Of a DNA stretch of 34,343 nt, positions 10,301-34,343 are shown one piece after another. The stretch lies in sequence record BK067790.1. One strand, given 5' to 3'. The notes under the pieces are model-generated. The model was given only the letters and a program-made list of their open reading frames with translations, was not told the origin of the DNA and made no database searches. Made by a program: the position numbers and the translations under genes. Each line of letters starts with the position of its first letter. Positions within the stretch are counted from its first letter, which is position 1.

Positions 10301-11269
10301 GAAACTGAAATTACTGGAATGGTGGCAAGAGGTGTAACTGGAACTGGTGCAGTAATTGACTGGGACGAACCAGCATACTATCAAGGTCAGGTAACTTCGT
10401 ATAACGTGTACTATGGAAACAGTGGAACACCAGCCACAAGTGCTGGAACCACAACCAACACATTTTCTAACTTTGCACCTCAGTTGGACTATGACACAAC
10501 ATACGTCTTTGGTGTAAGTATCAACTCACCTTTAGGCAACTCTGGACTCAGTAACATTGTTGCAATAACAACTAACGTTGATACCAGCATAGTTTCAGCC
10601 GATCCTACAACTGGTGGTGCTGGTTGGTTTGACATTGACTCAGTTAACAATCAGTCAGTTAATGTCATAGAGTTCCAAAGAGAAACTCAGATGATTAGTG
10701 GAAACCTTACTGACACATTACAAGTTGCATACCCTACATGGTGGGACGATATGACTTGTGACGTAGATTACAAGTTCGCACAAAAGACAGAGCAATATGT
10801 CGAGGGTGATGATATGACAGCACAGGTAAACTCAGCTAATGCAGACCAGCAAGTAATAGGATTCCAATTCCAAGAAGTTGACAACGAAGTAATTGAAGTT
10901 CAATGTGCACCTCAGCAAAGTACACAAGATGATGGTGTGTCAGCCAAGTATGTTATGACACAGAACAATCTTGGTGCAGTAGGTGAAGTTGGTACGCCAA
11001 ACATTCCAATAGTTACACAGATTACCAACTTTTCAAACGGAACTTACGGAACTGACGGTGACTTTGGTGCATTAAACATTGTAGGACTGTTTGCAATATT
11101 GATTTCAATGGTAGGATTTAACAGGCTAAACCCAATAGTAGGTGTACTTTTATCAGCCAGTATGATATTTGTATTGTCATGGTTCGGAATTATAACAATA
11201 CCAACTGCCATAATAGGTGCAATAGCATTGGTTATATTCCTAGCATGGGGAGCTACGAGGAATAGATAA
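4364..11269 (+). CDS. giant adhesin/tail-filament protein: signal peptide, two DNRLRE-like domains, LamG lectin domain, many FN3 repeats, C-terminal TM helices
   Basis: ATG 4364 gives MSKTLLVIPVLLVLLLVPTNVFA (signal peptide); LamG motifs (AFDFNG, SISIWIKP, WNHVVVT, FDGKIDEV..W); repeated FN3 motifs (P.APT.LT, LSW..P, Y.V.R, Y.F.V.A.N..G); three terminal hydrophobic helices. Confidence 0.9.
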   Translation: MSKTLLVIPVLLVLLLVPTNVFAQTDFGVTSDLTVEGLESFPNIVMTPPQEIEITTPITGLMTLPEERIESFTFEKFQDGFTWELDEDGFLYQQWDELGTNPEPKPEYPQVTENYTIVQNEDGTYTFATHSPYISDGYDWKPYILGEDENVVQIQIAGGTIVFDKVSGAVTIFNEYETVIDSDSYSVRTALIGSDVWTNLNVNNTDVETTVVEDGDKVTVSFIRENDEGKFTTEYVIYSGKIKTTAYFTNYIYENNKFAFTQTLDLPDNIVSVNNMDDIDLTDYVGVSFDRTTLEENEDLILEIKDIYYNSGLGFDNLWSVNVITPTKVALDYANVEQTQTVIGDTVELDPIYTVNHIGTMSPAQSTSSYGNSQGDSLGCGGRIASGDQGYNITWNLRNYVGSWYTWNGCRTAMVGFDLAGIPDTAVISDTKLVYDITSSSNAGTFDLNQMTQSGQDGWGLHNYDTSQAVGTNPYSVYDTANYDKTWEMYLDANNLGTQPNGAGSNYASNLSSAVGTYVTDLGSAGNADVQAQLNDSTSVNGVGEWFGIGMPYSAMKTGATASNNWTSQTVQTVSTQDMNFDNVNLLITFSSPPTEPTNVTTTANGSNVDLSWSASETLSDYIESSSAKTYVVPVALPATWSLWQGGASPTTPTMGVGGVLGTAFDFNGSTDMVGENFVTSDFASNSQGSISIWIKPEASGSSVGNPFGGTGFQSYWITNTPLWSAYPSNSFNMGSLYSNANAFTMNAWNHVVVTIDSTTSNNTTVVYVNGSPVQMYNYPSGTGGGSASSSNSKTASNLLANTILGGQYHPSPQFKYPFDGKIDEVSSWDKVLSQTEVTTLYNSGNGNTPDSINSNNNLITYFPLDNTSTPLPNMAVTSDPVTVTYDVKRDGTSVGTTTNTSFTDTTTAYGTPYLFSLTASTSNGSTSTTNFPITLTIPAPTGLTATLNIPNVDLSWTGVSSATGYKIEHSTDGTTWSTLVANTGNTNTTYSDTVPTPNTVNYYQVRTLIGSAESNAIYDSTTITPVNYRTYTATASATTCDTGTLYADGTHETGMPAQNGGNRYCLVTSMEYDISAIPDTSTITSAVIEETHSIWTSGFSPSCDYKSNMSQQPSTSTTQQKWDSVIAGTVYANDPNCISGYTSGTAYDVPLSSQAITDIETQLSGDWFGINWAIDNFPSLANAGTGGTPASVTGGTSLLKLEYSYIPPSANATVGGVPSAPTGLTATFNTTTADIDLAFTAPANNNGSAVIGYKVEVSTDNATWSTVTADTGNTNTTYTDLNPTMGSLNYYKVSAINAYGTGAVSNIDNDMAGVPPDAPTITSTSTDNPNTTPLEITVNWTAPTNTGTAGITNYEVYRDGTLVTTVGNVTSYTDTVPTGGGTFVYSLKSVTPHGTSVLSATASHTTPTVPPAPTSAPTLAIANPDSNPFDVTLSWSLPSSGGSAITSFEVFRSTDDITYSSVGNTSQLIFYDTVPNVGTFYYKFSSINLVGNSVQSPSSNIATPTEPVADSSVTLAINSPDPSPLDITISIVAPSGNGGSAITGYNLHSSNDDITYTQIATNVTTDQTVTVSSAGTWYIKSQAINNAGTAGLGSATSITTPSVPTGDASVTLAIPDPDNFPFDSTATFVAPSGNGGSAVTGYNLYYSDDDITYSQIATASNSVISQTLTGAGTHYFKVESINNVGTSALSSAITIDTPTVPSSDASATLAINNPNPSPLTITATLVAPSSDGGSAVTNYNLWISNDDITYTQIATAINGTFDQTVSQSGTYYFKVESTNLVGTGGLGSATSIATPTVPTAPQNAGSTIADIDNAPYDVTVTWETPSSTGGSDLTQYNVYRKQGSSAYSLLTTTTGLSITDTVPTSLTTNFTYKIHSVNNVGESTAFDDTTITTFNVPSAPTLSVTTGTTVLSWNVPSSDATVSSYKIYRDNVLLTTVGTVTTYSDFSTIVFGNSYDFKIVAVSSLGDSADSNTVTTTPETEITGMVARGVTGTGAVIDWDEPAYYQGQVTSYNVYYGNSGTPATSAGTTTNTFSNFAPQLDYDTTYVFGVSINSPLGNSGLSNIVAITTNVDTSIVSADPTTGGAGWFDIDSVNNQSVNVIEFQRETQMISGNLTDTLQVAYPTWWDDMTCDVDYKFAQKTEQYVEGDDMTAQVNSANADQQVIGFQFQEVDNEVIEVQCAPQQSTQDDGVSAKYVMTQNNLGAVGEVGTPNIPIVTQITNFSNGTYGTDGDFGALNIVGLFAILISMVGFNRLNPIVGVLLSASMIFVLSWFGIITIPTAIIGAIALVIFLAWGATRNR
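8620..9760 (+). repeat. four tandem ~290-bp FN3 units inside the adhesin gene
   Basis: Recurrent LAI..P...P, SGNGGSA(I/V)T, S.DDITY(S/T) motifs with DNA-level similarity (e.g. GTAGCACCAAGTGGTAA(C/T)GGTGGTTCTGC near 8961 and 9251). Confidence 0.85.
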
Positions 11270-12308: not shown

Positions 12309-15300
12309 ATGGTAAAATCTGCACAGGAAAAAGTATTAGAGAAAAAATATGCAGAAGCAGTATCAGGTAAAGACAAAGAAATACATGACGCACAGATTGA
12401 AGTTTATGAAGGACAAGTCACTGAAGCTAGGGACGCATATTATGAAGCAACTGAAAAACGATCTAAGGCTAGATCAAAACTTCCTAAAGACATTCCTGAA
12501 GAAAGTGAAATAAAAGAAAAATTACTTGAAGCACAATATATCAAAAGAAATATTTCCAGTCCGACTGAACGTGAACAAATAAGTGAATATGAAAAATCTA
12601 TATCTGATTACAGAGTTCATAAAAAGACTGTCAGTGTTTTAGACAAAGAGATACCACAGTTAAAAATACAAGCTGAAGAAGAAGTTAAAACAGTCAACCG
12701 TAAAATACAAAAGGCAAAGGAAACAGAAACAGTAAAACAGGATTCGCTTATAGAGGGGTATTCAAGTCAGATAAGTGCAATAAGAAAAGCAGAATATGTT
12801 TCACAAAAGAAGCAACAGTCATTGATAGTTTCTGAAGCAACTGCGTTGGTCAAGAAAGAGGACGCAAGACTTGAACAAAAACGTATTGCCGAAGAAGCAA
12901 AGGCATTAAAATTAAAACAAGAAGCTGATGTAAGACAAAAAGCATTTGATGAGATGAAAGGTGGTGGTAAAACAGCAGGGAAACAAATACATTACGGAAG
13001 ATACCCTAACATACCTTACGGACATGGTGAGATTTCACCAGCACCGCCAAGTAGAGGAACCAAAGGTGGTAAAATATACTGGATTATTGAAGATAGTTAT
13101 TATCAAAGAGCTGGTTCAATATTGGGTATCTCAGCAGAACAAGCCCGTAGCGTAGCAAGACATGGCATGGTTACTGGTTCAGGAAAATCAAGAGATAAAG
13201 CATTACGATCAGTTCAGGATTCTATTGACGGTGGCAATAGGGCAGAACAATACGCACAGCACAGGGCACTGGCAAAAAAGACAACTGCGTCTGCTTATGG
13301 AAATATGTCAGCACAGGAAAAGCTTACCAGTTCTGCAACGGCTACAATGTTTGCAACCAATCACAATATGTCTGCTTCAGAAATATCACAAAAGAAAGAA
13401 GCAAAGAAGGTAGTTCTACTTGAAGCAGTTTATGACGCAACCAATGGACGGTTAGGTAGCAAAAAAGGAGAAACAACAAAACAGGGTGAAGGAACATTTC
13501 AAGTGTTTGAGAAAGACGGAACCAATGTCACTGACAAAGTTATACCAATTATTAACAAACAGAGGGAAACAGAACTTGCCAATGCAAGGCAACAGCAATA
13601 CATTTCTGAACTTCGTGCTGGTAATATCGGACTTGCAAGGGCTTTATTAGATCCACAGACAAAGCAGACCTACACAAATTCTACAATGAACACTGACAAG
13701 TTTTTGACAGAACGGGGATATGATACTTCAAAACCTGATACGATTCCTAACAATCTTTTTAGTCCTGACTATAATGAAAAACTTACAGAAGCAAGGCAGA
13801 CCACTCAGGGTGATCTTAGAACTGCGACTTCAGGTTATACTGGAAAAACAAACCAGCCTTATACAATGCCAAAGGCTTCAATGAAAGTCCAGACAAAAAG
13901 AAAGGAAGCACAGGCAGTAATAGCAAAGTTTGATCCTAAGCCAATGGATCAGTTCAAGGCAAAAGATTCGTCATACGTTCCTTCAGTCGGAACTGTCACG
14001 TTAAAAAAGAATGAATTGTTGTCAAAGAAAGAAACTGATGTTTGGGGATTTGACCCTATCGCAAATCAAGTCAACAAAGATATGCAGACTTCTTGGACTG
14101 TGACGGTACAGAAAAAAGGTGCTGAATATACTTCTGACTTTAAGACTAGGGAAGAAGCAGTTTTGTTTAAGAAAAGTCAAGAGAAAGTATTCTCTGGAAC
14201 TGATAATGAATGGTGGAATAAATACAACTATGCACCAGCAGTTGACTCAGGCGAAGTTATACACCCAAGTAAAACTGAAACATGGTCTGATGATATAAGA
14301 CTAGGTGCTGGATATGTTATCACACCGTCTTACAATATTCTTAAAACTGTTTACAACCTGACACAGCCTGAAGATAAACAAGTCCCAATGTTGGCAACTG
14401 CCGAAGACAAGTTAATCGGTGGTACTATCACTGATGTTATGGACGGTACACCGTTAAAAGGTACAGGGGTAACTGGATTTGCTGACTATGTTGTAGAAAA
14501 CCCGTTCAGGGCTGTGGCTGAAGTTCCAAGTGCCGTTGTCACAGGTGTCATGGGTGGCAAGGCAATAACTTATGGAATTAAAGGTGCAAGTATTGGCGTA
14601 AGTGCAACTGCAAAACTTGGAAATAAGATAATTCAAAATAACGCACCTACAATAGTCAAGGTTCCGACTATGGCTGTGATGGGTGCTGGTCAAACAGTTC
14701 AGCGTGTCGGTACAAAAGTATCTTCAATTCCAAGTGTAATTGGAAGTTCTATTATCAGTTATGGTACAATTCCTAAAGCAACAAAATATGGTATGCCATC
14801 ATTTACAATTCCACAACAGGTAGTACGTCAAGGAATTGTAAAACCGTATGACAGTGCGACAATGTTTCAGGGAAGTCGTGTCGGGTTTGGTGCTAAGGCT
14901 AATTTTATTTTGACACCTTCAGGCAGAATGTTTGTAAGACAGTCAACTGATATTGCTGGTGAGATAGGTGCAAAGCCACAGTTCCTAAGCAAACAAGTTG
15001 CCATGTTTGAAAATGAAAACGTTGTAGGGTTTGCAACGAGAGGCAAAATGAAAACAACAAAATATGATATGCCAAAAGAAACCCCGTTCAAGTCTGACGT
15101 ATTTGCACCAACTGACAAAACGAAACTAATTCCAAAAGAAGGACTTCCAAAAGAAAAAAAACCGTTCCCTGAGTTATATGACAGTAAGGCAACTACAAGT
15201 GGAAAGCCGTTCCCTGAGTTAGTCAAAGTTGAGGACATTGGTAAAACCAGTATTCCAAAACTTCAGACACCGACAGTTCTTGACAGAATTAAGTCAACTG

Positions 15301-17018
15301 CATTGTACAAAACAAAAGTCAGTGCAAAGCAGTACAAGACAAACATTGACGAGGTTACGTTTTACTCAGATACAACTGGCGATTTGGTCAAGGGTGTCAA
15401 AAGACCCAAAGCCGAATTGCAAGGCGAGGGTGTCAATTACAGGGGATTTAAAAAGCCTGAGATAACTGGAACTAGAACAAGACTTCAGGACTACAAGACT
15501 TCAACAAGTCAGTCAACAATCAAAGGTCAGCTAAAGTATTCTGAAGTGGCTGGTGGCAAGATAAAATTCAAGGGAAGTCCAGTAAGACAAGTTGATACGA
15601 TAGTCACTGGTGCAAAACTTACTGGCAAAAAGAACTTGAAACTGATTGACGACATGGCAAAAGAAGGACAGATTGAAGAAATTGGAAAGAAGACTGTAAT
15701 GAAGGGGACTGATTATTTCGGGGGTGGCAAGAAGGCTGGTCAGTTAAAACAGTCATTGGAAAGCAGAAACCCTACAACGTATGAAGCCAAAAGTGGAAAG
15801 ATAAAACCAAAAGATGAAACAATACTTTACGGTGTAAGCAATAGAAATATTCCAGTTGACAAAAAGGCTTTCGCACAGACCATGAAAGAGTCAAACCTTC
15901 TTAGAGAAATGGCAGACAAAGCACCATTAAACAAAAAACCTACCGTACCAAAAGGTGTTGACGAACCACCAAAAGAAAAGTATCATGCATTTATCGGTGA
16001 GTCAAAGTCAACTGGTAAGACTTTTCAGGGAACTAGAATTGAACTTGGTTCAGGCATTGGTACAACGGGTGTCGGCAGTAGTTTCACCAAAACAAATGTT
16101 GATTTGGGTAAAGGTGGTGGTATCTCTAACATAAAAGATGTTAAAGGAATGTCTAGCAAACCTGATGTTGTTGGTGTTACAACCAATAGAATAAACGTAA
16201 AAAAGTTTGAAGAACCTAAAATACAAAAAGGTGATAAGATAGTTGACAGTAAAGAGGGGTCAACTGTTACAAGAACAAAACTTGATACATTCCAAGAAAC
16301 CAAAATCAAACTGGGTCAAAGTGCAGTATCAAAACCAGTACAGATACAAGTGCCAAAAGTTAAGGCTAGTGTTAAACCACCAAAGGTTTCGCCAAAAGTT
16401 AAACAGGTTGTCACACCTACTGTAAGTCAGAAAACTGGAACTGGTTTGGTACAAGAAACTGCACAGTTGACCAAACAGCAAACCAAACAAAAACCTAAGA
16501 TTAAACAAGCACAAAGACTTAGAGCAGTTCAAAGTCAAGTCGCTATAACAGCCGTAGTTGCAAAGACAGCACAGGTTCAGGCAGTTGCACAAATGAAACC
16601 ACCTACAATACAAAGAACAGTTACAAGAAAACCAGCAATAGTCATTGACATTAATTTACCTGTACCTGAAAGAAAGCCAAGAAAAAGAAAGCGTGGTAAG
16701 AAGGCTGGGTTCATTGGTAATGTAAGACTTGACAACATCATGGGAATGTACAAGAGAAAAGAAATCACATACGGTCAAAAGAAAGTTACAAAGTTGGAAA
16801 GACAGGACATGAGATTGACGGCTGGAACTAAAAATAGAATTGCACTTCCGTCTTCAGGTCTGCTAAAGACCAAGAAGAAAAAGAAAGGCAAGACAGAAAG
16901 TGTGTTTGGTAGAAGTGTAACAAAAACTAAAGACGAGTTTGTTGGATTTGAATCCAAGCCTAAAAAGAAAACAGTCAAGCGTAAAAAATCCAAATCCACA
17001 AAAGTCAGATTAATGTAG
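12309..17018 (+). CDS. giant Lys-rich protein (~1,570 aa), unknown function; candidate internal virion/DNA-delivery protein
   Basis: N-terminal coiled-coil-like region, central Gly/Ala/Val-rich stretch, very basic C-terminus; no signal peptide; ATG 12309 preferred over TTG 12297. Confidence 0.85.
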   Translation: MVKSAQEKVLEKKYAEAVSGKDKEIHDAQIEVYEGQVTEARDAYYEATEKRSKARSKLPKDIPEESEIKEKLLEAQYIKRNISSPTEREQISEYEKSISDYRVHKKTVSVLDKEIPQLKIQAEEEVKTVNRKIQKAKETETVKQDSLIEGYSSQISAIRKAEYVSQKKQQSLIVSEATALVKKEDARLEQKRIAEEAKALKLKQEADVRQKAFDEMKGGGKTAGKQIHYGRYPNIPYGHGEISPAPPSRGTKGGKIYWIIEDSYYQRAGSILGISAEQARSVARHGMVTGSGKSRDKALRSVQDSIDGGNRAEQYAQHRALAKKTTASAYGNMSAQEKLTSSATATMFATNHNMSASEISQKKEAKKVVLLEAVYDATNGRLGSKKGETTKQGEGTFQVFEKDGTNVTDKVIPIINKQRETELANARQQQYISELRAGNIGLARALLDPQTKQTYTNSTMNTDKFLTERGYDTSKPDTIPNNLFSPDYNEKLTEARQTTQGDLRTATSGYTGKTNQPYTMPKASMKVQTKRKEAQAVIAKFDPKPMDQFKAKDSSYVPSVGTVTLKKNELLSKKETDVWGFDPIANQVNKDMQTSWTVTVQKKGAEYTSDFKTREEAVLFKKSQEKVFSGTDNEWWNKYNYAPAVDSGEVIHPSKTETWSDDIRLGAGYVITPSYNILKTVYNLTQPEDKQVPMLATAEDKLIGGTITDVMDGTPLKGTGVTGFADYVVENPFRAVAEVPSAVVTGVMGGKAITYGIKGASIGVSATAKLGNKIIQNNAPTIVKVPTMAVMGAGQTVQRVGTKVSSIPSVIGSSIISYGTIPKATKYGMPSFTIPQQVVRQGIVKPYDSATMFQGSRVGFGAKANFILTPSGRMFVRQSTDIAGEIGAKPQFLSKQVAMFENENVVGFATRGKMKTTKYDMPKETPFKSDVFAPTDKTKLIPKEGLPKEKKPFPELYDSKATTSGKPFPELVKVEDIGKTSIPKLQTPTVLDRIKSTALYKTKVSAKQYKTNIDEVTFYSDTTGDLVKGVKRPKAELQGEGVNYRGFKKPEITGTRTRLQDYKTSTSQSTIKGQLKYSEVAGGKIKFKGSPVRQVDTIVTGAKLTGKKNLKLIDDMAKEGQIEEIGKKTVMKGTDYFGGGKKAGQLKQSLESRNPTTYEAKSGKIKPKDETILYGVSNRNIPVDKKAFAQTMKESNLLREMADKAPLNKKPTVPKGVDEPPKEKYHAFIGESKSTGKTFQGTRIELGSGIGTTGVGSSFTKTNVDLGKGGGISNIKDVKGMSSKPDVVGVTTNRINVKKFEEPKIQKGDKIVDSKEGSTVTRTKLDTFQETKIKLGQSAVSKPVQIQVPKVKASVKPPKVSPKVKQVVTPTVSQKTGTGLVQETAQLTKQQTKQKPKIKQAQRLRAVQSQVAITAVVAKTAQVQAVAQMKPPTIQRTVTRKPAIVIDINLPVPERKPRKRKRGKKAGFIGNVRLDNIMGMYKRKEITYGQKKVTKLERQDMRLTAGTKNRIALPSSGLLKTKKKKKGKTESVFGRSVTKTKDEFVGFESKPKKKTVKRKKSKSTKVRLM

Positions 17019-24610: not shown

Positions 24611-24729
24611 TGCCTATCGGTGGCTATGGGTACGGTGTAACAAGTGATTACACAGTAAAGTCTGGGAAACGTTGCCCTGCTTGTGGCAAAACAAAATGTA
24701 AACATGGAAAAAAAGCTAGAGTTTTCTAA
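24610..24729 (+). CDS. Zn-binding basic micro-protein (39 aa)
   Basis: MPIGGYGYGVTSDYTVKSGKRCPACGKTKCKHGKKARVF*; TAATG-coupled on both sides. Confidence 0.65.
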   Translation: MPIGGYGYGVTSDYTVKSGKRCPACGKTKCKHGKKARVF

Positions 24730-25307
24730 TGCAAGATAAAGTAAATTATATTTCCCCCGAAACTTTTGAGAGAATTGTTGAGTATGTTCCGATACTTGGT
24801 ATTCGCAAGTGGAAAGATGAGGACATTAAAATGCTCTATAAGACAATGTATTACTGTGCATTACGGGCTAACGAGGCGATTCATTTAAAGAAAGAAAGTT
24901 TCAACTTGGAAGATCGTGAAATTTATCTAGGCAAAACCAAAACAAAGAAACAAGATACTGCACATATTCCTCATATTTTTGTAGATGAACTAAAGACTTG
25001 GCTTATCTTCAAGGAAAAAGGCAGACTGTTTGAAGGGCTGACATATCCAAGACTGTATGTATGGTGCAAAAGAATAGGGTCTGACTTGGATATTTCAGCA
25101 TGGCAAAGTCTTGAAGCCGAAGTTGGTGAAAAGGTTGTGACTCACTTGTTTAGAAAGTCAATCGGCAAGGAAATGTTAAACGGAACTCATGGTGAAAAAG
25201 CCAGTTCGATTCCTGTAATATCAAAACACCTCAGACATTCAAAACCTTCCATGACAGTTGACCATTATCTAAAAGCCAGTCTTGAATCAGTCAAAGAGGC
25301 GTGGTAG
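24729..25307 (+). CDS. tyrosine recombinase (catalytic domain only, 192 aa)
   Basis: YYCALRANEA (R), KTKTK (K), HLFRKS (HxxR), LRHS (H), TVDHY (Y). Confidence 0.92.
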   Translation: MQDKVNYISPETFERIVEYVPILGIRKWKDEDIKMLYKTMYYCALRANEAIHLKKESFNLEDREIYLGKTKTKKQDTAHIPHIFVDELKTWLIFKEKGRLFEGLTYPRLYVWCKRIGSDLDISAWQSLEAEVGEKVVTHLFRKSIGKEMLNGTHGEKASSIPVISKHLRHSKPSMTVDHYLKASLESVKEAW

Positions 25308-25340: not shown

Positions 25341-25430
25341 ATGCCGTTTAAAAAAGGAAACAAACCTCACAACAAAGGGCACGTTAAAGTTGGGTCACAT
25401 TTTAAAGCAAAACCAAAACGTAAGAAATGA
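25341..25430 (+). CDS. basic micro-protein (29 aa)
   Basis: TTTTATAC about 23 nt upstream; MPFKKGNKPHNKGHVKVGSHFKAKPKRKK*; F.KG..P.NKG is NUMOD-like. Confidence 0.55.
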   Translation: MPFKKGNKPHNKGHVKVGSHFKAKPKRKK

Positions 25431-25513: not shown

Positions 25514-25798
25514 TTATTTTTTAAACTGACTCATAAAAGCGTCAATCAATATTACACAGCCGTTTACGGATTCACTTTCGTGTATTAGAAATGACTTGTT
25601 TTCTACAAACTTCAAATCAAATTCTATGTCCTTAGTAACCATAACTATGTCGTCCCTTGTTACAAGCCAGTCTTCCAAGTCATAGTCAGACACGCCCTGT
25701 GGTGTAAAGACCAGTTTGTAACCCAACTTTTGTAATTTTCGTACAAGCTTGGCATTTCTCATATTTTCATCAAGAAATATCTTTTTCATACCAGCCAT
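25514..25798 (-). CDS. PIN-like (Mut7-C/DUF5615-type) domain protein
   Basis: IFLDEN...L.KLGY...GVSD.DL...IVMVTKDIEF pattern; start likely MAGMKKIF (25798) or 25789. Confidence 0.7.
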   Translation of the reverse strand: MAGMKKIFLDENMRNAKLVRKLQKLGYKLVFTPQGVSDYDLEDWLVTRDDIVMVTKDIEFDLKFVENKSFLIHESESVNGCVILIDAFMSQFKK

Positions 25799-26084
25799 AT
25801 CCCCTAAGTCCGTCACGTTTTTCGTACAAACTTTCAATCCATTCCTTGTCAGTCAGGATTTCATCACCTGTCATTTCATAATGTGTCAGAATTATGGAAG
25901 AACAGTCTAGGCATTTACCTACTAGATTTCCATAACCCCCGTCAAATCCTGAAGCATTACTTTTTGAATGGAAACTTACCATTCTATGATTACAGTCTTT
26001 AGGGTCTTGCAACTCACCAAGTATCGCATTGATTATTGTCTTTGCTTCAGACTCGGAAGCCTTACGGATTTGTGGTTCACTCAT
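25770..26084 (-). CDS. hypothetical protein with C/H...CxxC
   Basis: GAGGAC SD before ATG 26084 (MSEPQ). Confidence 0.7.
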   Translation of the reverse strand: MSEPQIRKASESEAKTIINAILGELQDPKDCNHRMVSFHSKSNASGFDGGYGNLVGKCLDCSSIILTHYEMTGDEILTDKEWIESLYEKRDGLRGYGWYEKDIS

Positions 26085-26235
26085 TGTGTACGTCCTCAAC
26101 AAAACAACCAGCACATAGATACACGTTACCATCAACAAAAGATATTTCTTTGTTTTTTGGCAACTTTGTAACTATGTATCTGTGACCTATCCCTATCGGA
26201 TTTTCACAGTTGTCGCAGTATAGTGAGGACTTCAT
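26077..26235 (-). CDS. Zn-ribbon micro-protein (52 aa)
   Basis: MKSSLYCDNCENPIGIG...YLCAGCFVEDVHNE*; overlaps both neighbours. Not in the ORF track. Confidence 0.7.
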   Translation of the reverse strand: MKSSLYCDNCENPIGIGHRYIVTKLPKNKEISFVDGNVYLCAGCFVEDVHNE

Positions 26236-26432
26236 GGGGTGTCAGTCCATTCAGCGTATTTTTCTACATAGTCAGGGTCTTTTACATTCCACTTTGAAAC
26301 ATATTGTTCGTTGGTGGAATTATCAATGTAGTAAATCCATTCACCCATTCTAATGTATGCTACTTCGTCATTACGAATGTCAAGATTTATTGACTGTTTG
26401 TTTACCTTGACTTCCATTTTTATTGGCTTCAT
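26232..26432 (-). CDS. hypothetical protein
   Basis: ATGA-coupled in the leftward array. Confidence 0.7.
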   Translation of the reverse strand: MKPIKMEVKVNKQSINLDIRNDEVAYIRMGEWIYYIDNSTNEQYVSKWNVKDPDYVEKYAEWTDTP

Positions 26433-26743
26433 TGGTGTTCAATTCCTTTTGCTTCGTCTTTGTCTGAATACATTCTAGTGAATATGACTTCAAGTTTTGT
26501 AGGACTTCCGTCTTTGTCAAAGCTGACATAAACGGGATATTCCCCGTCACCCCAGTTGGTGAACGTTGCAACACCTGAAAACTTTTCACTAGGCAAGTTG
26601 TCAATGTTTGCACAAAAGTCACCCCACTTTGATTCGTCATACAGTTCAGGGTGGTGCTTGATGTAACAAGGGTCACCAACCCATACCAGTCCAGCGTCAA
26701 CTGAAACTGAACCTACACAGTATCTGCCTTTTTTGACAGTCAT
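26429..26743 (-). CDS. DUF4241-like viral protein
   Basis: VGSVSVDAGLVWVGDPCY...TNWGDGEYPVY motif pair. Confidence 0.65.
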   Translation of the reverse strand: MTVKKGRYCVGSVSVDAGLVWVGDPCYIKHHPELYDESKWGDFCANIDNLPSEKFSGVATFTNWGDGEYPVYVSFDKDGSPTKLEVIFTRMYSDKDEAKGIEHQ

Positions 26744-26895
26744 TGTTTCAAGCCCTCAACTTTCAAACATTCTTCACAAAGTATCTCACCTTTTTTGTTT
26801 TCAAAATACACGAAAGAAAGTACATTACATACTTTACAAACATAGTTTTTTGCAAACATTTGTAGGCTATTTTCTTTTTTTATAAAGTCGTTCAT
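26740..26895 (-). CDS. Zn-ribbon micro-protein (51 aa)
   Basis: MNDFIKK...VCKVC...ILCEECLKVEGLKQ*; ATGA coupling at both ends. Confidence 0.7.
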   Translation of the reverse strand: MNDFIKKENSLQMFAKNYVCKVCNVLSFVYFENKKGEILCEECLKVEGLKQ

Positions 26896-27113
26896 AAGTC
26901 CTCAATCCTTAGACCGTCTTTCAATATCAAGTCGGGGTGAGGTCTTTCTATCCCATATTTTTCAACTTGTTCTTTCATTCGCCATAAAACCCCACTAAAT
27001 ATTTCATTAAACATTTGATAGCCGTTAGCTTGATTTTCAGCTACGTTGTCTAATCGGGCTTTAGCTTCTTGTAAGGTTTCCATATAGTCACGAATGTCGT
27101 ATATGTCTGTCAT
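26892..27113 (-). CDS. hypothetical protein
   Basis: ATGA-coupled; junction motif upstream. Confidence 0.7.
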   Translation of the reverse strand: MTDIYDIRDYMETLQEAKARLDNVAENQANGYQMFNEIFSGVLWRMKEQVEKYGIERPHPDLILKDGLRIEDL

Positions 27114-27316
27114 TGTTTCAAGCCCTCATCTTTTACTGCCTTTATTGCAGTATTGAATCTTTCAGACCCCATACTTTCTTCTAACATTTTACCGATTTCA
27201 TCAGCTTCATTGAATATTTCATCAAGTGAAACTGATTCACCTCTAGCCTGTCTTTCATCTATCTTTCTTTTGGACATTATTTTGTCCCCTTTTTCCATGA
27301 TTTCATCATAGGTCAT
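27110..27316 (-). CDS. hypothetical protein
   Basis: ATGA-coupled; ends EGLKQ. Confidence 0.7.
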   Translation of the reverse strand: MTYDEIMEKGDKIMSKRKIDERQARGESVSLDEIFNEADEIGKMLEESMGSERFNTAIKAVKDEGLKQ

Positions 27317-27645
27317 TGTCTAGCCTCAACTTTTTTCATATATGCAAGTATCTCTTCCAACTCATTTATTGAAAAATGTGTTGTGCTTACAATATGTTTT
27401 GGTTTTGCTTTAGACGTTAATTTTGTTGGTAGTTTTCCGTATGACTTGATTTGGAAGTTAAAGCTTGTACTTCCATTCATACCAGATTGACTACAATAGA
27501 TTCTAATCATTGAACCGTCTTGATTAGCGTATTCTAGCCAATTATCTACTGCGTCTTTATCTACTTCGATTGCTTTACAAAATGGTTTGTCTATTAATAA
27601 ATCACCCATTCTTGTATCGGCACTTTTTACGATATGAGTTTTCAT
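27313..27645 (-). CDS. hypothetical protein
   Basis: ATGA-coupled. Confidence 0.7.
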   Translation of the reverse strand: MKTHIVKSADTRMGDLLIDKPFCKAIEVDKDAVDNWLEYANQDGSMIRIYCSQSGMNGSTSFNFQIKSYGKLPTKLTSKAKPKHIVSTTHFSINELEEILAYMKKVEARQ

Positions 27646-27839
27646 TGTGTTCTGTCCTCACAATTCTCATGCCAAACTAACTGCATTGAAATTTTTTCCA
27701 ACACTTCTTTTGGTATGTCTTTGTCTTTGATAGGTTCCTTACAATAGCAACATGAATAACCTAGTCCATATTGTTCTGACATTTTTGCTTCGTTACTTTC
27801 ATCAGATTGAACGAATTGATTTTGGTTTTTGTTTTCCAT
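27642..27839 (-). CDS. Zn-binding protein, first gene of a leftward operon
   Basis: CCYC...WHENC; TTTAATA about 23 nt upstream. Confidence 0.7.
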   Translation of the reverse strand: MENKNQNQFVQSDESNEAKMSEQYGLGYSCCYCKEPIKDKDIPKEVLEKISMQLVWHENCEDRTQ

Positions 27840-27902
27840 GATTAGTAATTATTGTACTAGGTATTAAATGTATAGTTTTCTATGGGAAATAGCATAAATA
27901 CT

Positions 27903-27962
27903 TTAGGGTTGATTTGGTTCTTTTGGCTTACATTTTGTACAAACATGATAGCGTTTTGTCAT
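27903..27962 (-). CDS. possible 19-aa peptide
   Basis: MTKRYHVCTKCKPKEPNQP*; starts 3 nt after the upstream stop. Confidence 0.3.
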   Translation of the reverse strand: MTKRYHVCTKCKPKEPNQP

Positions 27963-27965
27963 GTG

Positions 27966-28106
27966 TTAATATCGTGCAGAACGGATATAAGATTTTCCTG
28001 AAACACCAGCCATGCCGTAATGGCACAATGCACATTCATTATTTGAAGTCCAACAATGTCTAGGCTTACGACATTTCTGGGTCTTTTTACAAGTCTTACA
28101 CCTCAT
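27966..28106 (-). CDS. Zn-binding micro-protein (46 aa), paralog of 22495..22611
   Basis: MRCKTCKKTQKCRKPRHCWTSNNECALCHYGMAG...; ATGA coupling. Confidence 0.7.
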   Translation of the reverse strand: MRCKTCKKTQKCRKPRHCWTSNNECALCHYGMAGVSGKSYIRSARY

Positions 28107-28309
28107 AATTCTAAACGCCTACGCCTTGCAATAGTATTCTTTGCACGTTTAGATAATTTTACACCACAGCAAGGACACCAAATCCCTTCATACTTTATGA
28201 ACAAACAACATTTTGCACATTTTTTATATGGTGTATTTGCCAAATTTCTCACGACTTTTTTATGTTCGTATTCAGGTTTTAGACAAACATTCTTGCAAAC
28301 TAAAGTCAT
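28103..28309 (-). CDS. Thaumarchaeota-type CPCCG Zn-ribbon protein
   Basis: CKNVC...KKCAKCCLFIKYEGIWCPCCGVKL resembles the small conserved Nitrososphaeria family with KRC..C..FI.WDG..CPCCG..LR (recalled, unverified). Confidence 0.75.
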   Translation of the reverse strand: MTLVCKNVCLKPEYEHKKVVRNLANTPYKKCAKCCLFIKYEGIWCPCCGVKLSKRAKNTIARRRRLEL

Positions 28310-28698
28310 TTCCTACGCTTCCTTTTTTTCTTAGGTGCTGGTTGTGAGCTGAAAGCTTGAATTAATGCAAGTGTTCCTACTGCTATTTCGCCCATTACAT
28401 GACCAGTTTTTTTAAGGATTTGAATCTTACGTTCTTTAGACTTTCTTTTTCTTTCGATTTCGATTTCTTCTTTTGTTTGAAAGTCTGTTAAAATTACGTT
28501 GTATTTTTTGCACATAACTTCTTGAATGTTTCTTATTTCCCATGTGAAATTATGATTCGTGCTGTCAAAATGGTCACAAATTTTATCTTTGTCACCTGTT
28601 TCAAAGTCACATTCTAAACAGACACCAAGAACTATATCAGTATTAAAATTAGACCATTCTTTCATAGTGTATTTGCGAATATATCTCATATTTTGCAC
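28306..28698 (-). CDS. hypothetical protein with CxxC/H motif and basic tail
   Basis: CLECDF...CDHF; ends KKKRKRRK; the true start may be ATG 28689. Confidence 0.7.
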   Translation of the reverse strand: MQNMRYIRKYTMKEWSNFNTDIVLGVCLECDFETGDKDKICDHFDSTNHNFTWEIRNIQEVMCKKYNVILTDFQTKEEIEIERKRKSKERKIQILKKTGHVMGEIAVGTLALIQAFSSQPAPKKKRKRRK

Positions 28699-28868
28699 CC
28701 ATTTTTCTTACTATGGTTTACCAATTCAATGTATAATTCATCTTGAATTTTTCTAATATGTTCTGTTAGTTCAGGACTTAACATATTTTCCAATTCCATT
28801 AAATCGTTTAAATGACCCCTTGCCAATTTTATACGATTAGTTACTGCATACTTGCCAATTTTTTTCAT
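28686..28868 (-). CDS. hypothetical protein
   Basis: ATGA-coupled. Confidence 0.65.
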   Translation of the reverse strand: MKKIGKYAVTNRIKLARGHLNDLMELENMLSPELTEHIRKIQDELYIELVNHSKKNGCKI

Positions 28869-29449
28869 CTTAAAGTTTCCCTAAACATTTTGAATACAGT
28901 TTCATCTAATGGCTTAGATGTTTGGGTTAGTTCATCAAATATTTGATTATGTATTTGGTCATATTTTTGATTATACCTGTAAAGTCTTGTCCTCATTATA
29001 TCTTCATAAAACTCATGTACTCTATCACCCATATATTCACCATCATCATCTTTGACAATATCAAGTTCTATGTAATTTTTATGTCGTGGATCATGATAGT
29101 CAATTAAATGAACTTCTTTTGTGTCACCGAACTGGTCTCTTGCAACATCAAATATTGTACAGTTTCCAGTCCTAACCCACATATGCTGTCTTCCAGTCCC
29201 ATGTCCTGTAAGATGAATACCCTTAACTAAGCTCCAGCTTTCTTGCCAGCCACCTAATTTATTGTATAGTGATTCGTTACTTATTCCACAATGCCTCACA
29301 AATTTTCTTCCGTTGGACTTGAAGATTTGTGTTTTTTTATCATAAGTTCTATTTTTTATATTTTCAGAACTTAAAAATAATGAACCATGCATTATTTCAT
29401 CATAGTCTAAATAATATTCCTCATCTTGATAGACAATGCATTGAATCAT
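28865..29449 (-). CDS. hypothetical protein (194 aa)
   Basis: ATGA-coupled, junction motif. Confidence 0.75.
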   Translation of the reverse strand: MIQCIVYQDEEYYLDYDEIMHGSLFLSSENIKNRTYDKKTQIFKSNGRKFVRHCGISNESLYNKLGGWQESWSLVKGIHLTGHGTGRQHMWVRTGNCTIFDVARDQFGDTKEVHLIDYHDPRHKNYIELDIVKDDDGEYMGDRVHEFYEDIMRTRLYRYNQKYDQIHNQIFDELTQTSKPLDETVFKMFRETLR

Positions 29450-29643
29450 CTTAAAGTCCTCACGGTTTCGTCCTTGTATTCTAAGGTCTTTTCAACCCAG
29501 CCCAATATCAAGTCCATTGAATCAAGGTGTTTCTTCATGGCTTCTTTAGCTTCAAAATCTGTTTCTATATCGTACAGTTGAGACCATGAATCAAACAAGT
29601 CAAGGTTTAATTTGTACAAATTTTCCAAGTCTTTGTCGTTCAT
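29446..29643 (-). CDS. hypothetical protein
   Basis: ATGA-coupled, junction motif. Confidence 0.7.
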   Translation of the reverse strand: MNDKDLENLYKLNLDLFDSWSQLYDIETDFEAKEAMKKHLDSMDLILGWVEKTLEYKDETVRTLR

Positions 29644-29750
29644 TTTTCCAAGTCCTCATGGCTTTTTTCATGGGTGTTTTTGTTTGTGGTTCGGGTAAAC
29701 TGTTTACCACAATACCAACATTTAGGACTGTCCGAATTATATAATGTCAT
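29640..29750 (-). CDS. C2H2 Zn-finger micro-protein (36 aa)
   Basis: MTLYNSDSPKCWYCGKQFTRTTNKNTHEKSHEDLEK*; junction motifs at both ends. Not in the ORF track. Confidence 0.75.
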   Translation of the reverse strand: MTLYNSDSPKCWYCGKQFTRTTNKNTHEKSHEDLEK

Positions 29751-29938
29751 TGGTTCAAGTCCTCACCAATCGCCTTTTTATGACATTGCCAACATTCCCA
29801 ATCAGAATATAAACCTACTTTATTTCCACAATCGCACCATAAATTATATTCTGGACAATCATCATTTGTCCATTCATCAATCTCTTTTTTTGTATATGGA
29901 ATTTTTGCATATTCTATCTGTTCTTTTTCAGTAATCAT
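29747..29938 (-). CDS. Cys-rich small protein
   Basis: C..Y.LWCDC...ECWQCH; ends EDLNQ. Confidence 0.7.
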   Translation of the reverse strand: MITEKEQIEYAKIPYTKKEIDEWTNDDCPEYNLWCDCGNKVGLYSDWECWQCHKKAIGEDLNQ

Positions 29939-30309
29939 TTTTCCAAGTCCTCATTTTGTGCAATTTCTTTTTCAGTAAATCCAAGTTGCAAAAGAACATC
30001 TTTTAATTGCTCTTTTTCTTCTTCAAATATTTCATCAAAGTATTCATCATTACTATCGGATTCAATACCCCATAAACCACCTGAACTAATTGTTTGACTT
30101 ATGCCATTTATTCGGATTTCAGCTACAGCTTGAATCCCTACAAAATGCCATTCATTGTTATAATATGCTTCAAGTCTTTTTTTATCTTGTTTGGCATTTT
30201 GACGTTCATCAGGGTTTTTTGAGTTTATATCACATTGTTGTAAATATGATATATCCCCAACATCATCATCAGTTTGTTGACAACTTATTGATTCGATTTT
30301 TTTAGTCAT
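29935..30309 (-). CDS. acidic viral hypothetical protein
   Basis: W.FVGI.A...SGGLWGIESD motif seen in phage/plasmid hypotheticals; ends EDLEK. Confidence 0.75.
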   Translation of the reverse strand: MTKKIESISCQQTDDDVGDISYLQQCDINSKNPDERQNAKQDKKRLEAYYNNEWHFVGIQAVAEIRINGISQTISSGGLWGIESDSNDEYFDEIFEEEKEQLKDVLLQLGFTEKEIAQNEDLEK

Positions 30310-30599
30310 TGGTTCAAGTCCCCCATTAACCTAGATTTCATCTTTTTTGTGGCGATAGGTTTTGCCAATTTGTAGAAAACTAAAACATTATGACAGATAT
30401 CTTTTTTCTGTTTGTCTGTCAAGTGTTCGGTTTTCTGAACTGAAGAAATCTGACTTTCACAGCCTCTCAAAAAGTTGTCGATTTCTTCAAAGTCCAAACT
30501 GTTAAAGAGTTTTTTATACTCTTTTACAGTTGGCAGTTTGTCAATATTTCCTACTTCATACTGGCTTATCTGATTTAACAGATAAATGATTAAGGGCAT
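30306..30599 (-). CDS. hypothetical protein
   Basis: Coupled; ends GDLNQ. Confidence 0.7.
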   Translation of the reverse strand: MPLIIYLLNQISQYEVGNIDKLPTVKEYKKLFNSLDFEEIDNFLRGCESQISSVQKTEHLTDKQKKDICHNVLVFYKLAKPIATKKMKSRLMGDLNQ

Positions 30600-30877
30600 T
30601 AGTTCAAGCCCTCACTTTTTGCACAAAAATTGTCTTCTTGCATGGTCTTTAGACCATTGTCCTCTTTTTCCATTCTGATAAAGTTTAACTTCATCAAAAG
30701 TCCTGATAAAGTTATTTTTCTATCAGCCATGAATCGCCCTTTATCATCTATATCAGGGGTTTCTTTAATCCATGTATCAACTATTTTTATCAGTTCGTTT
30801 AACTGACTTAGTGATAGATGAGAAGCATTATTTTTAATAATGCCTCTCAAAGTCTGGACGTTTTTTGTATAACTCAT
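30599..30877 (-). CDS. hypothetical protein
   Basis: Start MSYTKN (30877) follows a GGGGGA SD-like run; ends EGLN. Confidence 0.7.
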   Translation of the reverse strand: MSYTKNVQTLRGIIKNNASHLSLSQLNELIKIVDTWIKETPDIDDKGRFMADRKITLSGLLMKLNFIRMEKEDNGLKTMQEDNFCAKSEGLN

Positions 30878-30878
30878 T

Positions 30879-31478
30879 TTATACAGTCCCCCTGATGAAA
30901 TGTTCTTCATCATCAAACAGTTTTTTCCCTAAACCATAGGTAAAATTATGGTAAGGATTAGCGTCCAATACACCATATTTGAAATCTAAGCATTTCAAGG
31001 CTATGTTGTAAGGCTTACCGTCAATTATTACAAAAAACGTGTAATAATTTTTGTTTTTGTTTTCGTGTGGAACTTCATAAAGTATAGTCCCTTTTGGCAG
31101 TTTCATTAAAACTGCTAAAGTTTCCAGTTCATTCCAAAATAAACCAGCTTCTTTCATTCTTTTCTCGTTTATGTCTGTGATTTCATTCCCTTGTTTTGAC
31201 AATGAACCCCATTCATAATGTGAGCAGATTAAATTATGCTCATCTTCACAGGCACTTTTTAAGATACTCAAAATATGATGGTGTCTTAAATTGTCCCCAT
31301 TAGCCAAGTCTGTTATCTTCTTAATTTTCAAGGCTTTTTTACAGGCTTTAATTCTGTCAGAAAATACAGTTGGTGCGATACCCTCATATTTTTTAGATAA
31401 TTCAGTATGCATTTTTGTTTTTTCTTTTGAATTATGTTCTAACCACACAGAATTTGAATTTGTTTCTATATGATTCAT
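30879..31478 (-). CDS. hypothetical protein (199 aa)
   Basis: ATGA-coupled, junction motif upstream. Confidence 0.75.
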   Translation of the reverse strand: MNHIETNSNSVWLEHNSKEKTKMHTELSKKYEGIAPTVFSDRIKACKKALKIKKITDLANGDNLRHHHILSILKSACEDEHNLICSHYEWGSLSKQGNEITDINEKRMKEAGLFWNELETLAVLMKLPKGTILYEVPHENKNKNYYTFFVIIDGKPYNIALKCLDFKYGVLDANPYHNFTYGLGKKLFDDEEHFIRGTV

Positions 31479-31816
31479 TTTAACAAGTCCCTCACTAAAC
31501 CAATTAATTTTTCTCTTTGTGCTTCGGTTATTGGTTCATCATTGTTCATTTTGTAAACTTTTGTTTTTTTGTCAAAACTAAACAATTTTTCCTTACTAGG
31601 ACATTGTTTGTTTAATACTGCCTTCCATACTGGACACGAAGCCCAATTATATCCTATTTTTGTAGGGTATAATTCCATCATTCTTTTTTGTATGTTGGGT
31701 TTAGAATCTTCAAAGTTTTCAGATTCACAAATTGCTCGTAAAAAGTGAGCTTGAAATTCTTCTTTCATTGTTGGTTTAACTGCTATTATGCAGTTTTCAA
31801 TTTCTTGGAGATTCAA
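31475..31816 (-). CDS. hypothetical protein
   Basis: TTG start overlapping the upstream TGA. Confidence 0.7.
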   Translation of the reverse strand: MNLQEIENCIIAVKPTMKEEFQAHFLRAICESENFEDSKPNIQKRMMELYPTKIGYNWASCPVWKAVLNKQCPSKEKLFSFDKKTKVYKMNNDEPITEAQREKLIGLVRDLLK

Positions 31817-32052
31817 TTTTCAATTCCCCATTCTTGTAGATTCTCTATTTCATCAAGCCATTCCTGTAAAATTTGGCATGGGTTTCTTCGTGCGTACATG
31901 ATGTTATCATGTCTAATATCTGAATTATCCCTAATTAACCAGTCAAGGTTTAACTCTAAAGATATACCTTGTTCGGCTTGTTCTATGTATTCTATCTGCT
32001 CTTTGAAATCATCTTTTAATTCCTTCAATGCTTGTTTTTGTTCAGGATTCAA
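31813..32052 (-). CDS. hypothetical protein
   Basis: TTG start immediately after the upstream TAA; GAGGGG SD. Confidence 0.7.
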   Translation of the reverse strand: MNPEQKQALKELKDDFKEQIEYIEQAEQGISLELNLDWLIRDNSDIRHDNIMYARRNPCQILQEWLDEIENLQEWGIEN

Positions 32053-32211
32053 TTAGAAACCCCTCACAAAATTGGTACTAATTCTTTCTATTTCTTTTGC
32101 TATTTTTGAGGCTGTGAAAAAATCGCCTGTAACAATAGCTATTCTAGCCTTATCGGCTAACCGTGTCAATGTTTCGGTATCTTGAAACATTTGTGTTTGT
32201 TGTGTTTTCAT
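32053..32211 (-). CDS. first gene of the main leftward operon (52 aa)
   Basis: MKTQQTQMFQDTETLTRLADKARIAIVTGDFFTASKIAKEIERISTNFVRGF*; TTAATTAA about 22 nt upstream. Not in the ORF track. Confidence 0.7.
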   Translation of the reverse strand: MKTQQTQMFQDTETLTRLADKARIAIVTGDFFTASKIAKEIERISTNFVRGF

Positions 32212-32260
32212 GATTAGTATAGAAACGTATAGTTAATTAACTTTTCAGTCGTTACTTATA

Positions 32261-32922: not shown

Positions 32923-33516
32923 ATGCCACAGTCCAGACTTCCAGACATTAATTCTGCGTTCATTAGGTATAGAAGCGAAGCCATTCACGCTTTACAGACT
33001 AAGAACTGGTCTGCCATGCATGGTGCATTAAACGGTATTAACTCATTGTTGCCAGTTGATTATCAGGTTATAATATCAAGCCAAGACTATGAGCAACTGG
33101 CAAAGACTGAGATAACTTATGCTTGTGGCAGTTGTAGTGAATCCATAGACAAGTCTAATGTTCAGGTTTTTGAGCTAATGCCTGACAGTATGCAATCGTT
33201 ACTACATGGTCGAACGTTTAATAAAGTATGGAATTGTATAAAATGTCACAGTACGAATATGTTGAACACTACTGCCATTTCACAGACAATGCTTCAGAAC
33301 CCTACATACTTGGGAATTGTACCTGACCCACCTGAAAGAAAAAATGGACTTATGGATAGAATGAAGTTTAACATAGAGATTGAAAGATGGGGTTGGCTTT
33401 TACTAAACGAAGAAGAATATAAGATGGCAAAGTTTAGAGATGATAACTGGAACAAGGGTGATGAAGAAATGGGTGATATTGACAATTCATTAGATGATAA
33501 AGAGGGCGATACATAA
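32923..33516 (+). CDS. Zn-finger-containing hypothetical protein (197 aa)
   Basis: YACGSC...WNCIKC; TAATG-coupled to the ATPase; TTTATGTACAAA repeated upstream (32867, 32895). Confidence 0.8.
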   Translation: MPQSRLPDINSAFIRYRSEAIHALQTKNWSAMHGALNGINSLLPVDYQVIISSQDYEQLAKTEITYACGSCSESIDKSNVQVFELMPDSMQSLLHGRTFNKVWNCIKCHSTNMLNTTAISQTMLQNPTYLGIVPDPPERKNGLMDRMKFNIEIERWGWLLLNEEEYKMAKFRDDNWNKGDEEMGDIDNSLDDKEGDT

Positions 33517-34343
33517 TGCCAATAACCACAACCACAAAAAAGATAGTTGCTAAAGGTGAGAATAAAGCACCATTAACTACTCATTGGAAGGGGGTATCTA
33601 TGGTTAGAAATCATTCGTTTTTGGCAACTGTCAGGGAAATTATTAACTTCAGTGCAGAAATTGACGTATGCAGAATTGGTCTTATTGGTTCAATGCACTC
33701 AGGAAAATCTACGTTAAGTCAGTCCATAGCCCATGCCATACACAAACACGCAGACTTGCAATACAAGATTAAGGTTTTGTATAAAGAAGACTTGTTAAAC
33801 TTTGAAAAGACATTACTGGCATTGGAACCAGTCAACTATATTTTGATATTTGATGATGTATCGTTTATGGGTGCTAGTGCAAACAAGAAACAAATTGAGA
33901 TGGTAAAGTCAGCCGTAACCACAATCAGACATCTGGACGGGGGACGGGACGTTAAGGTTATCGTAATGATGAACTATCACTATTCTATGGGACTTGACAA
34001 ATATCTCAGGTCGGCTGATTTCAAGTATATCACAACGGTAGATTCTTCAGAAAATGAAAATTTGATTAATATGTTTGGTAAAAAATACCAGCAAAAGATT
34101 CTGGACTTTAAAAAGTACAGACACATGGCTATTACCAAAAAGTATTGGCTTATGAAAATATCAAAAGACGGTGGACTATTCAAATATGAATACAGAAACC
34201 CGTTCATTCCTGTGATGTTTTGGAACGAAAACTCGTTACGTTTTATTGTGTCACCTACTAGACAGTGGCAAGACCCGATTTGTTCAAAATGTTCTGAAGC
34301 TACAACTTCAGGCGAATTAGAGTCAGACGTTCCTATTGAACAG
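33516..34343 (+). CDS. P-loop ATPase, probably A32/FtsK-HerA-type genome-packaging ATPase (continues at 1..240; ~355 aa)
   Basis: IGLIGSMHSGKST (Walker A), YILIFDD (Walker B), TIRH...VIVMMNYH...LDKYLR; CxxC near the end. Absent from the ORF track because it has no stop inside the window. Confidence 0.85.
   Translation, partial: MPITTTTKKIVAKGENKAPLTTHWKGVSMVRNHSFLATVREIINFSAEIDVCRIGLIGSMHSGKSTLSQSIAHAIHKHADLQYKIKVLYKEDLLNFEKTLLALEPVNYILIFDDVSFMGASANKKQIEMVKSAVTTIRHLDGGRDVKVIVMMNYHYSMGLDKYLRSADFKYITTVDSSENENLINMFGKKYQQKILDFKKYRHMAITKKYWLMKISKDGGLFKYEYRNPFIPVMFWNENSLRFIVSPTRQWQDPICSKCSEATTSGELESDVPIEQ

Follow-up and report, generated by a model that had tools for sequence, protein, structure and literature searches.

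The analysed stretch of DNA, hereafter the window, is from end to end the same sequence as BK067790.1, the metagenome-derived, 34,343-bp genome of Nitrosopumilaceae spindle-shaped virus isolate NMM1. The host group of this virus is the marine ammonia-oxidising archaea (Nitrosopumilaceae). On the minus strand, the window carries a leftward array of 25 small genes, open reading frames (ORFs) 29 to 53 (25514..32211), and about a third of the junctions between them are copies of one short element. This element combines a Shine-Dalgarno (SD) core with the overlapping stop and start codons of consecutive genes. In related viruses, whole genes have been gained, lost or reordered, with breakpoints and precise indels in the element. 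We think it probable that this clade-specific junction element acts as a short-homology recombination linker, by which genes would be exchanged with their expression signals intact. NMM1 is among the 11 genomes described in PMC10866085, a paper that mentions neither the junction motif, nor the integrase, nor recombination.

The junction element

The element measures approximately 18-20 nt and reads (G/T)TGAGG(G/A)CTTG-(G/A)A(A/C)(A/C)A-ATGA, with GAGGRCTTGRAMMA as the consensus over the motif contexts. Its parts are the SD core GAGG, a conserved RCTTG extension, a short A-rich spacer and an overlapping start and stop. The first-pass annotation of the window had listed four exact repeat pairs, all of which we recovered: 26739-26758 with 27109-27128 (20 nt, TGAGGGCTTGAAACAATGAC), 29640-29659 with 29935-29954 (20 nt), 29746-29762 with 30305-30321 (17 nt) and 28865-28876 with 29446-29457 (12 nt). 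All four are maximal, and a general repeat search ranks the same family at the top. The A-B-A-B alternation of copies noted between 29.6 and 30.3 kb is likewise present, and the C-terminal peptides reported for the array proteins (EGLKQ, EDLNQ, EDLEK and others) are correct. When the window was scanned with GAGGRCTTGRAMMAATGA, allowing up to two mismatches, seven matches were found against 0.03 expected, all of them on the minus strand and at stop/start overlaps. The 11-nt core gave eight matches at junctions and three chance-level matches elsewhere (1.57 expected).

The annotation had further held that the same sequence recurs at many overlaps and is conserved beyond the SD. The enrichment of the repeat family bears this out in part, at about a third of the array junctions; the conservation is not array-wide. 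Mean spacer identity is 0.35 over the 23 coupled array junctions and 0.33 over the other coupled junctions (p=0.36). Whole-array spacer conservation was therefore rejected and the claim narrowed to a subset of junctions. The motif is thus a repeat family, whose copies cluster in two hypervariable spots at 29.4-30.6 kb and 26.7-27.1 kb. The absence of such conservation from the rightward operons was borne out, as the rightward genes have GAGG or GGTGAT SDs and unrelated spacers.

All copies in the array lie on the minus strand. Following the direction of transcription, a variant, GTGAGGGACTTGTTAAA-ATGA, joins ORF51 to ORF50 (31475..31495), and GTGAGGGCTTGAACTA-ATG, a hybrid of two copies found in the relative NMP1, joins ORF49 to ORF48 (30597..30615). 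The alternating series begins with the 'A' copy GGGGACTTGAACCA-ATGAC between ORF48 and ORF47 (30305..30323), followed by the 'B' copy ATGAGGACTTGGAAAA-ATGA between ORF47 and ORF46 (29935..29954), a second 'A' copy, GAGGACTTGAACCA-ATGAC, between ORF46 and ORF45 (29746..29764) and a second 'B' copy, again ATGAGGACTTGGAAAA-ATGA, between ORF45 and ORF44 (29640..29659). ORF44 is joined to ORF43 by a short-spacer variant, GTGAGGACTTTAAG-ATGA (29446..29463); in relatives, at least nine different genes come next at this junction. In the second hypervariable spot, the copies between ORF36 and ORF35 (TGAGGGCTTGAAACA-ATGAC, 27109..27128) and between ORF34 and ORF33 (26739..26758) are the left and right repeats of a two-gene indel.

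As the element overlaps the 3' ends of coding sequences, unrelated proteins share their last residues, and we analysed the codons under the core at junctions chosen solely by the amino acid encoded. GAG was used in 55/55 cases against a background of 15%, and TTG in 52/58 (background 27%). At the codon between them, GAC was found in 37/40 cases (background 52%) and GGC in 22/38 (background 17%). An SD would explain GAG but neither the third-position C nor TTG, and the shared C-termini are therefore a by-product of a DNA or RNA motif: the constraint is at the nucleotide level, not the peptide level. Peptide-level selection for a shared C-terminal tag was considered and rejected, because rare synonymous codons are nearly invariant. 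Judged against the canonical archaeal anti-SD sequence and the SDs of the virus's own late genes, the RCTTG extension would go beyond what SD pairing explains.

Gain, loss and reordering of genes in related viruses

The element is found at junctions of non-homologous genes in the marine relatives NMP1, NMJ1 and NMC1, more weakly in NMH1, and in all 22 non-redundant related arrays from metagenomes. Neither the distant family members NTT2, NBC1 and NBD1 nor contigs L065, L070 and L072 have it; their junctions show ordinary SDs and variable spacers. A scan of IMG/VR detected multiple copies in this clade only. Single motif matches in 12 unrelated IMG/VR contigs were discarded as chance-level, these contigs having no homology to the window. 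A sister clade, represented by L062 and L080 (integrase 49% identical), has a consensus of its own, GGAGGYTGTACARGA-ATGA, with five matches in L062 against 0.01 expected. Its motif regions (L062 5556-7185, L080 5300-9030) belong to an array located upstream of the integrase gene on the same strand, and GGAGGCT...-ATGA junctions also occur there. Across the genomes compared, the junction element is thus clade-specific. A simple host-ribosome signal would not be expected to differ from clade to clade or to be restricted to the array, since it would also mark late genes.

Comparing the array with the four closest genomes by blastn revealed gene-sized blocks of 72-98% identity with unrelated genes between them. 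Pairwise comparison of all 22 arrays yielded 2,874 informative block ends, and 59% of them are located between -22 and +10 relative to a gene start (12% expected). Right block ends peak at +3/+4, whereas the left ends have their maximum at -5..-1 and a shoulder at -14..-21, which is where the motif starts.

Two indels show the repeats in detail. The unit formed by ORF35 and ORF34 (26759..27108, minus strand) is present in NMM1 and absent from NMJ1, and it is bracketed by the 20-nt pair at 26739 and 27109. Where NMM1 has these two copies, NMJ1 has a single 20-mer TGAGGGCTTGAAACAATGAC (L007 14261-14280). The flanks of the unit align to NMJ1 at 98.6% and 88.1% identity, and both alignments overlap on the lone copy. 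Gene gain and loss with breakpoints at the motif, which the first-pass annotation had anticipated for relatives, are therefore found. In the second case, GTGAGGGCTTGAACCAATG and GTGAGGGCTTAAACTAATG (L006 31105-31124 and 30969-30987) enclose an additional gene in NMP1, ORF43 of that genome, and NMM1 has one hybrid copy at that site, GTGAGGGCTTGAACTAATG (30597-30615).

Gene order is permuted among the compared relatives, not merely interrupted. With array proteins numbered by families from blastp clustering, the order 5-8 of NMM1 is reversed to 8-5 in L040 and L050, and the order 5-35 of NMP1 to 35-5 in L048; in L053, family 35 is placed after the ORF44 homologue. The permuted genes keep 83-96% nucleotide identity between orders. 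Around the anchor gene ORF44 alone, at least 20 arrangements were found, several of them in independent assemblies.

To locate the crossovers, a linkage analysis was run on the 55 distinct junction contexts that carry the motif. Where two contexts have their downstream gene in common but differ in the upstream one, the -5..-1 spacer is identical in 33/46 pairs; the count is 21/72 for pairs with only the upstream gene in common and 194/1367 for pairs in which both differ (Fisher p=1e-5). Spacer and core thus tend to have different partners, the downstream gene for the former and the upstream gene for the latter, which places crossovers inside the element. Depending on the event, they lie to the left of -10, between -10 and -5, or at or after the ATGA; as the G/A at -10 changes partners in some events, the crossover points are spread over approximately 20 nt. 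Families with the core at their 3' end also have more varied downstream neighbours than the others (diversity 0.69 vs 0.31, Mann-Whitney p=0.001). Neighbour diversity correlates with the motif (Spearman 0.47, p=0.006), also at a stricter fixed offset (rho 0.35, p=0.04).

ORF43 (28865..29449, minus strand) is a cassette that also occurs in unrelated thaumarchaeal virus contigs. Its homologues are 66-86% identical at the amino-acid level (L073 6001-6573, L079 2235-2807, L076 3838-4410). L073 carries AmoC (292-855), Dam and an N6_N4 methyltransferase, and other ORF43-bearing contigs carry an HD-domain protein. ORF43 is the sole region common to the window and those contigs, pointing to gene exchange between different virus groups of ammonia-oxidising archaea. 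The homologues end in FREVIC, FRDAIV or FKCIIN, without the junction motif. In NMM1, the protein ends in FRETLR, encoded by ACTTTAAGATGA (28865-28876), a 12-nt direct repeat of the upstream junction at 29446-29457. From this comparison, a gene also found outside the array has array-type ends, its 3' end having been remodelled in NMM1.

Two further observations concern individual gene starts. ORF30 (25770-26084), compared with L006 26058-26556, lacks the gene that lies upstream of its homologue in NMP1 and NMJ1 (family F19), and it opens with the first 9 nt of that missing gene (ATGAGTGAA), an in-frame deletion joint within gene 5' ends. ORF21 of NMJ1 (L007 12566-12673, 35 aa) starts with the junction element and the first 32 nt of the ORF48-family gene and is divergent from there on; recombination appears to have produced a chimeric start in this gene.

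Proposed mechanism and competing explanations

Being the sole sequence common to otherwise unrelated neighbours, the element could serve as a portable short-homology linker. We propose that a crossover or template switch between copies, in co-infecting relatives or within one genome, would insert, delete, replace or reorder whole genes while the SD and translational coupling are kept. The moving unit would extend from the 5-nt spacer through the ATG and the ORF to the next ...GAGGRCTTG core, so that the last one or two residues of each protein would be supplied by the next cassette. The element would amount to a translational-coupling junction standardised by one viral gene pool. The enzymology might be homologous or microhomology recombination, by host or viral enzymes, or replication slippage. 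The element, and RCTTG in particular, may be kept mainly for translation or regulation, with recombination as a by-product, or else for recombination itself.

Several points weigh against a linker role. Breakpoints also fall exactly on ATGA overlaps that have no extended motif, for instance downstream of ORF33 homologues, and in one case a deletion joint sits 9 nt into a gene and not at the motif. Hence the motif is not required, and selection for intact, coupled genes contributes to the pattern. The pair counts are not phylogenetically independent, sampling was built around one anchor gene (ORF44), and the relatives are without exception assembled from metagenomes. The case that RCTTG does not pair with the ribosome draws on the anti-SD canonical for archaea and on the SDs of the virus's late genes. 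Lastly, comparison alone cannot separate cause from effect between motif and variability.

These points bring into play an explanation by translation only. The element would then be a ribosome-binding site in extended form, or an operator through which a viral or host regulator would control the translation of early genes, as at the targets of T4 RegA; it would have no recombination role, and the breakpoints would reflect selection for intact genes. The fixed register to the ATG, the single orientation, the SD core and the confinement to a non-structural array agree with such a signal, as do the breakpoints at overlaps devoid of the motif. The start-associated sequences (SAS) of mycobacteriophages share these features, including conserved positions unable to pair with rRNA (PMC3203893). 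Nevertheless, translation only would leave unexplained why the two halves of the element go with different genes, the spacer with the downstream and the core with the upstream one, why the neighbour diversity of motif-ended genes is doubled, and why indels are flanked by direct repeats of 17-20 nt with one hybrid copy in the relative. Moreover, a translational role is compatible with a linker role and competes with it only in its exclusive form, which we regard as unlikely.

Two other explanations involve an enzyme that acts on the element. The more general one is that the element is the dedicated substrate of a virus enzyme, be it the conserved 192-aa recombinase encoded next to the array, acting like IntpTN3 with low specificity and dependent on homology, or an array-encoded protein, and that each clade has co-evolved its own linker. 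We consider this improbable; if it were true, the array would represent genuine enzyme-driven cassette exchange in an archaeal virus.

The narrower one is that the adjacent tyrosine recombinase, or another viral enzyme, recognises the element as in an integron, cutting out or inserting cassettes. The first-pass annotation had put this forward for the recombinase, with microhomology recombination as the other possible driver. The recombinase, ORF28 (24729..25307, plus strand), is a 192-aa protein composed of the catalytic domain only. All catalytic residues are present (R46, K69/71, H139-x-x-R142, H170, Y180), so that an apparently active enzyme adjoins the array, and direct repeats bracket the cassettes. 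In addition, certain archaeal integrases are capable of homology-dependent recombination with low specificity, and among thaumarchaeal att cores there are some of only 8 bp (PMC8371274).

Most tests of an integron-like system were negative. No attC-like hairpin was detected when the -50..+30 regions of nine motif junctions were folded (mean minimum free energy z -0.10 vs -0.12 for other junctions), these regions being no more stable than shuffled sequence. Folding of the complementary strand of the motif junctions gave z +0.51, and the consensus has no dyad. ORF28 shows no IntI-type features beyond the general PF00589 domain, and a PDB sequence search with the integrase returned a weak XerH match only. 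Instead of lying divergent beside attI and a Pc promoter, ORF28 is convergent with the promoter-distal end of the array, the promoter-like starts being at 32212 and 27840, and the crossovers have no fixed point but are scattered through the element. The integrase also behaves as a core gene: no family member examined lacks it, its identity being 49% in the clade whose motif differs and 40-57% in relatives that have no motif. No tRNA or Rfam elements that might mark an attP were found in the window, and two scans of 185,579 GTDB genomes (with a single protein and with an alignment) yielded no provirus from which an att site of the integrase could be read. The longer contigs with integrase homologues (L062-L066, L070-L072, L080-L082) are mostly related viruses and showed no att site; L072 also carries transposase genes. 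As the attC hairpin, the IntI/attI/Pc layout and the fixed crossover all fail, we judge an integron-like system very improbable. A link between ORF28 and the junction element is not supported; of the two drivers proposed, the data favour microhomology recombination.

That the shuffling might come from chimeric metagenome contigs joined at short repeats is extremely improbable: although all relatives are metagenome assemblies and co-occurring strains share repeats, the repeats (17-20 nt) are below the usual final k-mer sizes, the order 49-10-ORF44 homologue-47 occurs in four independent assemblies and the orders 8-66-ORF44 homologue, 16-45-90-68 and 8-5 in two each, and NMM1's own arrangement was recovered three times, so that chimeras are unlikely as a general explanation.

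Genome setting, known analogues and significance

The array consists of two tightly coupled operons, 32211->27966 and 27839->25514, with 4-nt ATGA or TTGA overlaps at 20 of the 24 junctions. The stop/start overlaps leave no room for promoters, and only two promoter-like starts were found. The first (32212..32245, minus strand) is A/T-rich and ends in ...CTATACTAATC-ATG, and the second (27840..27875, minus strand) reads TTTAATAC...AATTACTAATC-ATG; both are putative promoters. ACTAATC-ATG is common to the two operon starts and conserved in relatives. The A/T-rich, TATA-like stretch and the lack of an SD before it suggest that the first genes are leaderless. For the majority of array proteins, no relatives are known. 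When all 25 were scanned against Pfam and PHROGs, the matches were scattered and weak, to zinc ribbons, to DUF4241 in one case, and to three PHROG families whose function is not annotated. The array is a hyperplastic accessory gene region, probably expressed early.

Other features of the window lie outside the array or in part of it. As ORF56 runs off the right end (33516-34343) and ORF1 off the left end (1-240), the genome is recorded in circularly permuted form. The lengths of two giant ORFs (4364-11269 and 12309-17018) differ greatly among relatives. An HNH endonuclease gene, ORF7 (3069-3710), is shared with NMJ1 (L007 4530-5171) and missing between the same neighbours in NMP1, NMH1 and NMC1; it resembles a mobile insertion of the homing type. 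The two arms of a 20-nt inverted repeat (95% complementary) lie in the integrase/array intergenic region (25403-25422) and inside ORF37 (27393-27412).

Short conserved sequences at gene boundaries have precedents in bacteriophages. The lambdoid 'boundary sequences', or modular-evolution linkers, are reportedly such sequences, proposed as places where mosaic modules preferentially undergo homologous exchange (Susskind & Botstein 1978; Clark et al. 2001). They are sporadic, and are not known to keep a fixed register to the start codon or to form a repeated family within one operon.

The nearest mechanistic analogue is the promoter-early stem-loop (PeSL), a mobile regulatory cassette of T4-type phages (Arbiol et al. 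2010, PMC2839356; Comeau et al. 2014, PMC4122927). In both cases, the small genes of a hyperplastic region, whose functions are unknown, have conserved expression signals on either side, homologous exchange between copies is proposed, and inserted genes would stay expressible. Indels between close relatives in the form of two copies versus one chimeric copy, as described for PeSLs, are found here too. PeSL mini-circles have been demonstrated. Nevertheless, PeSLs are approximately 100 bp long, intergenic, and composed of a sigma-70 promoter, a stem-loop terminator and an SD. The NMM1 element measures approximately 20 nt, contains neither promoter nor hairpin, is embedded in the upstream coding sequence, preserves ATGA coupling rather than transcription, and belongs to a virus of an archaeon.

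In anatomy, the closest counterpart is the SAS of cluster K mycobacteriophages (Pope et al. 2011, PMC3203893). SAS are lineage-specific, as the junction element may be, judging by the IMG/VR scan and the distant relatives. Both are asymmetric, and both combine an SD core with conserved positions that do not pair with rRNA, as would follow here from the canonical archaeal anti-SD. Both lie a few bases before the start, in one orientation, in front of unrelated families of non-structural genes only. However, the SAS consensus, GGGATAGGAGCCC, is unrelated to that of the junction element, which is an analogue and not a member. SAS have no reported recombination role and no built-in stop/start overlap, and about half of them are accompanied by 17-bp inverted repeats (ESAS), which NMM1 lacks.

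The likeness to integrons lies in gene-sized units that probably have no promoter of their own and would be expressed from a common one upstream, in the shared recombination sequence with which each unit ends, and in an order and content that vary between relatives. By contrast, attC sites are imperfect inverted repeats of approximately 57-141 nt that fold into hairpins, and NMM1 has none; its crossover is not fixed, its recombinase is not divergent beside attI and Pc, its element is a translation-coupling junction in coding sequence, and the order of its backbone genes is largely kept outside the hot spots. The NMM1 element differs from both PeSL and SAS in being a 20-nt sequence within coding sequence, built on an ATGA overlap, in an archaeal virus.

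Archaeal viruses are rich in small genes without relatives, whose turnover is poorly understood, and for one abundant marine group the junction element would offer a concrete mechanism at the level of the sequence. A coupling junction of 20 nt that doubles as a crossover site would allow genes to be swapped, deleted, permuted or captured, as with ORF43, while their expression is kept. The C-terminal residues of a protein would be set by its downstream neighbour, which matters for annotation and for protein alignments. As the sister clade has its own consensus, the early regions of these viruses may in general contain such linkers, which would be able to evolve. That would carry the concepts of PeSL and SAS over from bacteriophages to archaeal viruses, in a form that can be tested with existing virome reads.

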